64,000 nt of DNA from Orbicella franksi (lineage: Eukaryota). The stretch covers positions 3,348,001 through 3,412,000 of the forward strand of contig OZ116710.1 of assembly GCA_964199315.1 (NCBI GenBank). The letters are read 5' to 3'. Within the stretch, counting starts at the first letter, position 1. Each line of letters begins with the position of its first letter. Positions 16,575 to 19,120 of this stretch are shown in pieces. The notes under the pieces were generated by a model. The model did not search any database and was not told the DNA's origin. It saw nothing but the letters and a program-made list of their open reading frames with translations. Position numbers and translations under genes: made by a program.

Positions 16575-17492
16575 ATGGCTATCTGTTCTCTGGCAGCATT
16601 GATTCTTTTCTTGCTAAGCCTTGCTACAACCGGCAAAGCACAATCGCGTTATCAACAGAGAATCCTCGTCCTTGGAGGAGATGGCATGTTAGGAAGCGAA
16701 ACAGTAGCCCGATTGAAACTCAGAGGACACGACATCACCATTCTGCATCGAGGAACGTGGTACTGGGACTCCGCTCTAAGAATCAAGCCATGGGTGAAGT
16801 TTGTACAGTGCGACCGGGAAGACTTTGACGTCTGCGCTGATAAACTAGGTGACATAACTCGAGAAAAAGGCATATTTGATGCAGTGATCGACTTTAGTGG
16901 GTACAAACCAAGCCATATCAAGGTAAACAGGGGTCCTTTGTCATTTCACTTTACAATATCAGTTTGTTGCTTGTCTAGACGTGATCTGGGCAACACTCGT
17001 GCTTGAGCTCACGTATATAATTTAAAGTAGTGCTTGATTCGAATGACATTGTCAACCCTCAAAATTATAGCGACATATGAAAGGTTATTAGTCTGACCAT
17101 GTCTCCGAATAGAAGGTCAGGTAATTTATATTTGTCTTTTGGACGTTGCGTGACAATTTACATGAAAAACTTCAAAGAGAAACAATCATTGTTACTAAAT
17201 GAGGGTGTCAATAAGATGGTGGCTTTCACTGCTAACGGTTAACATTTTGGCTTTTTTGCTGCTAACGGTTAATTTATTTTCCATTGTTTTGATAAGTTAA
17301 ATTTTTTTTTTCATTTTTTTAAAAAAAGCTAAAAACGTATTTTAATTACCGTAAAACATATTTAATTTAAGGTCTAAGGACCATCCCGGGACTGAAAAAC
17401 GTATCATTATAAGAATTGTAGTCTAATATTGCAAACAAGCCACAAAACAAGTCAAAAAAAAAGTATTTACAAGAGATGTTGAGACTTTCATT

Positions 17493-17536
<44 letters not shown>

Positions 17537-19120
17537 ATTTGTTACGGCTAACGGCTAAAATTTTCAACTTTACGTCTAACGACACAATCTTTGGCCCGGG
17601 GAGGCGTTTTACGACTGACGATTAACCCCAGTGAGACCCTCTTTAATAAGCATTTGATTTCTTGAAGTAATAAAATAATGGCATTTCGAGAGAAGTAATA
17701 TATGAAATGACTCTAGTAAATTATTTCTCATGTCCCTGATTTGGTAGTAAACTAGTGCGAGCACTTTCAGCAAATTGTCAAATTGCAGCATGTTAAATTT
17801 CGCGATTTCGATCAGTTCAAGAAAACGAGGGGAGTCCAATGAGCCGAAATAAAATATGCGCGAGTTTAAAATAAGATTGAGGGAGTGGTAGCGCCGGGCA
17901 ACTGACTTTCGTTGTTTCTCTGAGACTTCCAAATAGCTTACCCAATCGCATCCGTTTCCTCGCTCTAAGCTATTTCACGTTTAAGTTTAAGGTTCTCTGT
18001 ATTTCCGCAGGATTTTATGGGCAAGATGCGTAGTAAGATTCGACGGTACATCTACATCAGTACTGATTCAGTGTACGAGGTTTGTCAGGAGCCTTCCCAC
18101 GATGGGCCCACGCTTGAGGAGGACGCTGTGCGTCCAGAGGATCCGAATACAAGAGAGGCCCATGCTCGTAAGGACCCTTACGGTAGCGCCAAGCTGGACT
18201 GTAAGTAAAACACTACCCAACTACTTTAGATTAATAAGGACTGCGCTTTTTATTCTGGTTGTCGTCGTAAACATATTTGTGCATACTGCAAGAGCTAGAG
18301 AAGGCTAGTGTAAAAATGAAATTTTTTTTGAATTACATTGAAACGCCCGGGGAATCTCTTGTCTAGTTCCTAGTCCTTTTGATTTTGCCGCAGTCAATCT
18401 GTTTCGGGTCACGTGGCTCGAGCGAGTGCCGCAGTCTCATTAGCAATTAAATGGTGGAACATTCGTTTTGCAGGTGAAGATGTAATAAAGAGGGAAAATG
18501 AACTGTGGAACATCCCTTACTTGATTCTACGCCTGCCTGACGTCATTGGTCTCCGTGACAACACCAACAGATTCTGGAACTACCTTTTATGGATGCGATT
18601 CCAAGACATATTTGACCGGCCAGTGGTAATACCACACAGCCTCCAAACTAGATCTCTCAGCTTCGTCTTTTCTGAAGATGTGGCGAATCTTTTGGTAGTC
18701 CTTCCGGAGTATGGAGACAACGTGTATAACTTTGCTTACAACCTTGCATTTCGAGAACAAGTGACACTCGAAGAATTGCTCCGAAATATGGCCCAGCACC
18801 TTGGTCTCCCTGCGGTAAAGTTTGATAAGCCTAACCAATGGGGTACCCACTATTACCCCTCTGTTACGCGTGGCCCGTTGGATATTTCCATGGCGGAGAA
18901 ATTTCTTCGTTGGAATCCGCATCAGCTTGACCATGGAATTAGAAAAACCGCGCAATTTTACGAGTACGCCATGAGGTCTTCGGAATTTCAGGTTCAACGA
19001 AAGGCAATCCTCGACAGTTTGGATGTCCCTTCTCATGCAATGGGAGCGTTTAGGAAACGGTTGAAGGAAGTTTATAATGTGGATTATGTTAGGCCGGATA
19101 ATGTAAAAGACGAGTTATAA
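16575..19120 (+). CDS. Extended/atypical SDR, NAD-dependent epimerase/dehydratase family (CSP41-like), 394 aa, with signal peptide and C-terminal KDEL; exons 16575-16922, 18011-18200, 18474-19120
   Basis: Splice sites AAG|gtaaac, ttccgcag|GAT, GACT|gtaagt and ttttgcag|GT give a 1185-nt CDS in frame. Motifs: Rossmann ILVLGGDGMLG, ISTDSVY, YGSAK (YxxxK), LRLPDVIG and SFVFSEDVA. The N-terminus MAICSLAALILFLLSLATTGKA is hydrophobic, and the protein ends VKDEL*. Confidence 0.9.

Follow-up and report, generated by a model that had tools for sequence, protein, structure and literature searches.

A KDEL-tailed extended short-chain dehydrogenase/reductase of the coral Orbicella franksi, probably resident in the endoplasmic reticulum lumen

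Positions 16575-19120 of a 64,000-nucleotide stretch of the Orbicella franksi genome (GenBank assembly GCA_964199315.1, contig OZ116710.1, positions 3,348,001 to 3,412,000; the whole stretch is called the window hereafter) hold a three-exon gene on the + strand, and we favor, with moderate confidence, the reading that it encodes a soluble oxidoreductase of the extended short-chain dehydrogenase/reductase (SDR; epimerase/dehydratase) fold that resides within the endoplasmic reticulum (ER) lumen. Joining 16575-16922, 18011-18200, and 18474-19120 yields a 1185-nucleotide open reading frame (ORF) of 394 amino acids plus a TAA stop. Exon 1 (16575-16922) encodes residues 1-116, including a signal-like segment, strand β1 of the Rossmann fold, the glycine motif, strand β2 with its Asn/His58-Arg59 pair, and Cys79 and Cys87, and is followed by a GTAAAC donor; exon 2 (18011-18200) encodes residues 117-179 and the first base of codon 180, carries the catalytic Ser/Thr and YxxxK motifs, and is followed by a GTAAGT donor; exon 3 (18474-19120) runs from the rest of codon 180 to residue 394 and the TAA, and contributes the substrate-binding domain and, at the C-terminus, two helices with a flexible tail. 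Both introns are of the GT..AG type, with acceptors ending in ...TTCCGCAG and ...TTTTGCAG. The reading frame is closed 5' of M1 by an in-frame TGA on the + strand at 16542-16544, 11 codons upstream of the ATG, and since the next in-frame methionine, M38, sits inside the glycine motif, 16575 is the sole start that keeps the Rossmann fold intact. At the other end, a + strand AATAAA polyadenylation signal at 19291-19296 is consistent with the 3' end of the gene, and RNA depth stops in the 19228-19378 bin.

Transcript contigs and polyA reads back the model at its start codon, at its two splice junctions, and in its terminal exon. A Logan RNA contig (L002) holds the entire 394-residue ORF, from MAICSL... 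to ...VKDEL, with splicing identical to our model and with the same upstream in-frame stop. A database search with exon 3 additionally returned a protein called on RNA-assembly contigs (P0001, 357 amino acids) that spans both exon junctions unbroken; its shortness reflects the gene caller's choice of start codon, and the source contigs hold the full ORF. Raw reads of a polyA RNA sequencing run (X24) cover 16510-16962, 18020-18200, and 18473-19300 and leave the introns empty, the T and A runs of intron 1 having been skipped as repeats in read mapping, and five of these reads cross the splice joint from 18200 to 18474. The sequence was found in 14 RNA runs labelled coral or coral metagenome. Together, contigs and reads confirm the terminal exon from which the first-pass annotation, made from the DNA letters, had read a KDEL ending. 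The L002 protein differs from the window protein at four residues (L9S, R25H, H167Y, and Q223H), which fits allelic or population variation. The transcript contigs also show several silent or intronic differences from the window, and no change of any kind touches a conserved motif. Intron 1 contains three copies of a unit of about 30 nucleotides that includes GCTAACGG(T/C)TAA, located at 17224-17283 and 17540-17569 and flanked by long T and A runs (17296-17329 and 17486-17543); these units may be a degraded small repeat element.

The spliced protein bears every feature that had first been read from it, namely a signal-like N-terminus, a GGxGxxG motif, ISTDSVY, YGSAK, and a final KDEL. The signal-peptide-like segment, M1-A22 (MAICSLAALILFLLSLATTGKA; 16575-16640, + strand), stands out in a 19-residue Kyte-Doolittle scan, in which residues 1-19 have a mean hydropathy of 2.27, every other 19-residue segment reaches at most 1.1, and no second hydrophobic, transmembrane-like segment appears. 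Its hydrophobic core (I3-A17) is about 15 residues long, and the small residues G20 and A22 at positions -3 and -1 would place a cleavage site at A22|Q23. The AlphaFold2 (AF2) model has a helix at residues 2-18, then a linker, and then β1 at residues 29-33, the strand at which protist homologs that have no N-terminal extension directly begin. The C-terminal KDEL (residues 391-394; 19106-19117, + strand) satisfies the PROSITE pattern PS00014, [KRHQSA]-[DENQ]-E-L, and lies on a low-confidence tail whose last block has a pLDDT of 47.

Comparison across the family lends good support to a predicted residence in the ER lumen. Two criteria were used to sort 179 full-length homologs, namely a hydrophobic stretch within an extension of at least 12 residues before β1 and a C-terminal [DENQTSK][ED]L tail. 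Both features are present in 101 of the 179 sequences (the ER class) and neither in 54 (the cyt class), and the 24 mixed cases are mostly visibly truncated gene models that begin at or just before β1 and end in KDEL, RDEL, or HDEL. Even the strict PROSITE pattern [KRHQSA][DENQ]EL occurs in 82/101 ER-class rows versus 0/54 cyt-class rows, and the most frequent tails of the 109 signal-bearing rows are KDEL (22), RDEL (15), HDEL (15), REEL (6), KEEL (5), and HQEL (5). Orthologs from sponge to amphioxus thus retain the hydrophobic N-terminal extension together with a [KRH][DENQ]EL-type tail, and because signal, motifs, and KDEL recur jointly in about 100 homologs, their joint presence in the coral protein is not due to chance. 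A third feature varies with these two: a cysteine pair, counted by the regular expression C-x-R-x(5-11)-C and represented here by Cys79, which opens a C-D-R run, and Cys87 (16809-16835, + strand), is found in 94/101 ER-class rows versus 2/54 cyt-class rows. This candidate lumenal disulfide would fit acquisition on entry into an oxidizing compartment. A second pair, C141/C180, was ruled out as a class marker, being specific to neither class. When a tree is built from core sequence that lacks the N-terminal extension and the final six residues, no more than 5 changes are required to place the ER/cyt label on it, and in a smaller, midpoint-rooted IQ-TREE analysis, ciliate-type rows lie outside a clade of 43 mostly ER-type rows with 99% support. 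This is the pattern that a single ancient relocation with few reversals would give.

The family to which the coral protein belongs is widespread in animals. A profile search of 1.84 billion cluster representatives returned 444 clusters at E <= 1e-30. The named members of the family are all called "uncharacterized protein" or "NAD-dependent epimerase/dehydratase domain-containing", except for two, from Aplysia and Centruroides, that bear the automatic NCBI name "CSP41b-like". Members were found in the sponge Corticium; in the cnidarians Nematostella (two genes), Hydra, Hydractinia, and Montipora; in many bivalves and gastropods; in the annelids Owenia and Ridgeia, the brachiopod Lingula, and Priapulus; in the chelicerates Limulus and Centruroides and in Artemia; and in the hemichordates Ptychodera, Saccoglossus, and Glandiceps and the amphioxus Branchiostoma. 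Signal-less forms are present in Tetrahymena, Brachionus, and unnamed protists, and the AFDB cluster neighbors that follow Nematostella carry accession prefixes that probably belong to chromerid, dinoflagellate, and MMETSP protist entries. The first-pass annotation had described an enzyme of a kind not recognized from vertebrates; in agreement with this, none of the best 120 matches of an amphioxus query (down to E 7e-71) bears the name of a vertebrate, tunicate, insect, or nematode, which is good, if not absolute, evidence that the family was lost in these four groups. Two signature motifs, back-translated and run against 185,579 species genomes of bacteria and archaea, yielded one partial locus, in a metagenome-assembled genome, and no operon clue; therefore, the family is essentially eukaryotic. 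In the full-text literature, searched also by ortholog locus names, we found no publication on any family member. Two outlying subgroups were also seen, an "LLLK" type without signal (P0116) and an "NDEL" type (P0152). A few members in the databases are far longer than 400 residues (P0155, 660 amino acids, AFDB A7RRD1; P0156, 1057 amino acids; P0134, 506 amino acids, with PF01549 and PF01370); either neighboring genes were merged in the models or these are real fusion proteins, one possible partner being the ShK-type domain PF01549.

The Orbicella genome itself encodes a second member. A six-frame search uncovered an intronless paralog (G000:C5:5362793-5363860; L003:1393-2829:+) of 479 amino acids that shares its motifs with the window protein, starts with a signal-like segment, carries about 100 additional, acidic residues at its C-terminus (25% Asp+Glu), and ends in HLDEL. 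The paralog clusters with hemichordate and amphioxus proteins (97% support) and the window gene with another coral and Nematostella (98% support). Since each groups with different animal lineages, the two lineages are old.

In terms of fold, the window protein is an extended SDR of the sugar-modifying neighborhood, as Pfam, structural, and profile matches all indicate. Its sole Pfam match is the generic family PF01370 (Epimerase; cut-off 20.9 bits), which the full L002 ORF hits at 59.9 bits and an ortholog (P0010) at 56.9 bits. An AF2 model built on a 72-sequence alignment is of high confidence (pLDDT 94.3, pTM 0.90) and has a two-domain extended-SDR body, extra C-terminal helices at 349-361 and 366-380, and the low-confidence tail that bears KDEL. 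Foldseek against the PDB places the UDP-glucose 4-epimerase TM0509 (4zrm) on top (E 8e-19, TM 0.79 by target, 342 alignment columns, 18% identity), followed by dTDP-glucose 4,6-dehydratases, a UDP-GlcA 4-epimerase, and other GalE enzymes, and a family profile run against PDB sequences recovers the same entries (4zrm at E 2.5e-18, and at 7e-11 with the C-terminal domain alone). Among AFDB models of Swiss-Prot proteins, CSP41b comes first (E 7.7e-19, 366 aligned residues), with a putative GalE, 2'-dehydrokanamycin reductase, and RmlB next at about 1e-17. Of the initial label of an epimerase/CSP41-like type, the CSP41-like part holds weakly, by this small margin and by the two automatic names. 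No narrower assignment emerged from the NCBIfam models: the equivalogs galE (TIGR01179, 15-20 bits, cut-off 262.3), RmlB (TIGR01181, 13 bits, cut-off 365), and RmlD, as well as the GDP-fucose synthase, other sugar-nucleotide, and thioester-reductase models, are all sub-threshold, and the ESM Atlas returned generic "epimerase/dehydratase" clusters and nothing more specific. All characterized subfamilies are roughly equally distant from the window protein, at 17-24% identity. The best sequence matches are uncharacterized proteins rather than any known cytosolic enzyme and, along with the ortholog and RNA results, support the original proposal of a soluble, presumably ER-resident NAD(P)-binding enzyme.

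The conservation of the active site argues for an active enzyme. In the 72-sequence alignment, the dinucleotide-binding motif GGDGMLG (residues 34-40; 16674-16694, + strand) has invariant G34, G35, and G40, with Gly rather than Thr or Ser at its first position; ISTDSVY (residues 132-138; 18056-18076, + strand) has invariant S133, D135, and S136 and a Ser or Thr at residue 134 in 71/72 sequences; and the catalytic Tyr173 and Lys177 of YGSAK (residues 173-177; 18179-18193, + strand) are each found in 71/72. A further family signature, LRLPDVIG (residues 198-205; 18527-18550, + strand), contains Asp202. Across the 155 sequences of the ER and cyt classes, at least 99% of each class retain S/T134, Y173, and K177, and the same holds for D135, S136, R59, R81, D106, R199, D202, D208, R212, P308, and V310. 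Therefore, the chemistry is likely to have been left unchanged by the change of compartment.

The end of β2 bears on the cofactor. His58-Arg59 (16746-16751, + strand) occupies the position of the NAD-specifying Asp of GalE-type enzymes, and HMMER alignments to GalE structures align the Asp of 4zrm and 7k3p to position 58, which across the family is Asn, Ser, His, or Thr, never Asp or Glu, and is followed by an Arg59 that does not vary. As a general rule for Rossmann folds and SDRs (Persson/Kallberg/Oppermann classification), NADP(H) is favored where the end of β2 has no acidic residue and an Arg follows. Because position 58 is non-acidic and Arg59 invariant, we would expect a preference for NADP(H), and the cofactor is probably an exchangeable NADP(H) rather than a tightly bound NAD+.

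The main rival explanation, which we consider rather unlikely, is that the protein works on nucleotide sugars in the ER lumen as an epimerase, dehydratase, or decarboxylase that holds NAD+ tightly, similar to GalE, UXS, or RmlB, and that it interconverts UDP- or GDP-sugars, imported into the lumen, on behalf of the glycosyltransferases there. Among solved structures, the nearest are all UDP- or dTDP-sugar enzymes, and the C-terminal domain aligns to 4zrm by itself. However, Asn or His58 and Arg59 stand in place of the NAD-specifying Asp. In GalE, three residues hold the UDP diphosphate, namely the strand Asn in "RY(F/A)N", the "RD[YF][IV]" Arg, and the Arg before "GD"; in HMMER alignments, the first is replaced by the invariant Asp202, the second aligns to a hydrophobic Leu, Met, or Ile at position 241 (Leu241 in the window protein), and the third has no conserved counterpart in the family. 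Given these roles in GalE, canonical nucleotide-sugar binding would be absent from the family, and a nucleotide-sugar substrate is not secure because the diphosphate-binding Asn and Arg are not conserved; the nucleotide-sugar option among the substrates first listed as candidates (lumenal nucleotide-sugar, lipid/steroid, or redox chemistry) is weakened to this extent. Similarly, RmlB-type dehydratases have a T-D-E acid/base motif that T134-D135-S136 resembles, yet the invariant Ser136 takes the place of the dehydratase Glu, and the equivalog scores for galE, RmlB, and RmlD (13-18 bits) fall far under their cut-offs (224-365).

Another possibility, which we regard as improbable, is that the N-terminal segment is an uncleaved signal anchor, making the product a type II membrane protein like UXS1, or that the protein is mainly secreted instead of being a soluble lumenal resident. 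The uncharged N-terminal run of 20 residues is at the upper end for a signal peptide, and the n-region has no basic residue. In contrast, the hydrophobic core of about 15 residues followed by small residues at -3 and -1, and the median longest apolar run of 12 residues in extensions across the family, speak against an anchor, and a KDEL-type tail, present in 82-101 of 101 homologs depending on the pattern, would be purposeless on a secreted or Golgi-anchored protein. Least probable of all is a non-catalytic NAD(P)-binding protein of the secretory pathway, whether a chaperone or redox sensor in the manner of NmrA/HSCARG or a binder of the CSP41 kind: while the RNA-binding SDR fold of CSP41b is the top Swiss-Prot structural neighbor, some members are named CSP41b-like by NCBI, and no substrate is assignable, the conservation of the S/T-Y-K triad and of many pocket residues in metazoa and protists alike is the pattern expected of an active enzyme, and the ER lumen should contain no RNA for CSP41-type binding.

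In our best reading, the protein would oxidize or reduce a carbohydrate-like alcohol or ketone as an NADP(H)-dependent dehydrogenase or ketoreductase, with H6PD supplying the cofactor in animals. The N-terminal 22 residues would serve as a cleavable signal peptide, and the mature protein (approximately residues 23-394) would fold in the lumen, possibly with a Cys79-Cys87 disulfide, and be retrieved from the Golgi by KDEL receptors through its flexible C-terminal KDEL. The Ser/Thr134-Tyr173-Lys177 triad would then mediate hydride transfer between the nicotinamide cofactor and a secondary alcohol or ketone. Since the C-terminal domain is homologous to that of the GalE type, a carbohydrate-like substrate is most likely, though it need not be a nucleotide sugar.

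Lumenal NADPH for such a reaction could come from an H6PD ortholog that we found in the genome (G000:C10:23984454-23985299; L007:721-3222:+). This single-exon gene encodes an 834-residue protein with a hydrophobic N-terminus and the domains G6PD_N, G6PD_C, and 6PGL (6-phosphogluconolactonase), which aligns end to end with the human "GDH/6PGL endoplasmic bifunctional protein" (H6PD, PDB 8em2; E 1.7e-180). Because pyridine nucleotides do not cross the ER membrane, H6PD maintains a separate pool of NADPH inside the lumen (PMC5901385). The 11β-HSD enzyme is named as the consumer of this H6PD-made NADPH (PMC9114485) and as the sole reported interacting partner of H6PD (PMC12032772). It is tempting to hypothesize, as a tentative possibility that we hold at well below even odds, that the family is an unrecognized soluble consumer of H6PD-made NADPH in the ER of non-vertebrate animals: a KDEL-retained extended-SDR ketoreductase or dehydrogenase for a lumenal carbohydrate-type substrate, be it free, glycan-bound, or lipid-linked, that moved from the cytosol, the site of the protist homologs, at or before the origin of animals and was later lost in vertebrates, insects, and nematodes.

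Several observations weigh against the proposal of a lumenal, NADP(H)-dependent enzyme. The catalytic residues are identical in the signal-less homologs of ciliates and other protists; therefore, the chemistry is not ER-specific, and in those organisms the substrate must exist outside the ER. The signal-peptide call draws on hydropathy heuristics and homolog comparison, and the n-region, as mentioned above, is free of basic residues. The NADP(H) preference is suggested by a general Rossmann-fold rule, and the Cys79-Cys87 pair is a disulfide candidate by virtue of sequence co-variation. Moreover, the sequences behind the class counts (101 and 54) share ancestry, so the counts do not represent independent events. 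The window protein also has zero N-glycosylation sequons; since, in addition, the number of sequons per protein is similar in the two homolog classes (1.77 versus 2.09), sequon counts are uninformative.

Regarding the surroundings of the gene, a divergent gene lies upstream on the minus strand (10226-12692), with exon-like ORFs at 10226-10546 and 12504-12692 whose translations are macrodomain-like. It is expressed in the same RNA runs as the SDR gene, with RNA depth at 15000-15450, and a few hundred bases separate it from the SDR start codon. Downstream of the SDR gene, a 180-residue open frame rich in Ser, Gln, and Ala on the minus strand (21586-22128) probably represents one exon of another, unrelated gene that includes a low-complexity region.

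Fold and chemistry, as considered here, are both thoroughly familiar; the unusual part is to find a signal peptide, a KDEL tail, and an NADP-type signature combined in an extended SDR that is predicted to be soluble. If the proposed reading is true, a Rossmann enzyme that is soluble, conserved, and tagged with KDEL and that bears an NADP(H)-type signature, in a family that spans sponges to amphioxus and alongside an H6PD ortholog, would represent a new class of lumenal redox/carbohydrate enzyme and would hint at a role for H6PD in animals without glucocorticoid metabolism. The family would also provide a clean example of an enzyme changing compartment, in which signal peptide, retrieval tail, and cysteine pair were gained together and the catalytic residues stayed constant, and it is open to direct testing in Nematostella, Hydractinia, or molluscs.

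Among known systems, GalE-type enzymes such as that of Thermotoga maritima (TM0509, 4zrm/4zrn) share with the coral protein the two-domain extended-SDR fold, the Gly-rich motif, the S/T-Y-K triad, and a homologous C-terminal domain with a "...KA..LGW.P" segment. Despite these analogies, identity is 18-20%, and the window protein differs by its signal peptide and KDEL, by approximately 50 extra C-terminal residues that form two helices and a tail, and by Asn/His58-Arg59, Asp202, and Leu241 in place of the β2 Asp and the nucleotide contacts. UXS1 and the plant enzymes GAE and MUR4 are likewise extended SDRs, with a catalytic domain directed into the secretory-pathway lumen, and UXS1 structures (2b69 and 4lk3) are among the family-profile matches. 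These enzymes are Golgi type II membrane proteins without a KDEL tail and retain the NAD+ and UDP contacts, whereas the coral family has departures at the GalE-equivalent sites. To our knowledge, every lumenal extended SDR on record is a Golgi type II membrane protein of this sort, and we know of very few NAD(P)-binding enzymes of the sugar-epimerase fold in the ER lumen.

CSP41a and CSP41b are chloroplast stem-loop-binding proteins of the SDR superfamily and of cyanobacterial origin (PMC3276088). CSP41b is the top Swiss-Prot structural neighbor of the window protein, yet identity is 19% and its margin over GalE and RmlB is negligible in a comparison of structure ranking alone. Moreover, CSP41 is plastid-targeted and binds or cleaves RNA, whereas the coral family has a secretory-type N-terminus, not a transit peptide, and an intact catalytic triad. 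Finally, the H6PD/11β-HSD1 system of the vertebrate ER lumen would share its logic with the arrangement proposed here, that of a lumenal SDR using NADPH made in situ. The established lumenal NADPH user is the classical, membrane-anchored 11β-HSD1 (PMC9114485; PMC12032772), a steroid SDR, while the coral protein is an extended SDR, predicted to be soluble and retrieved by its KDEL tail.

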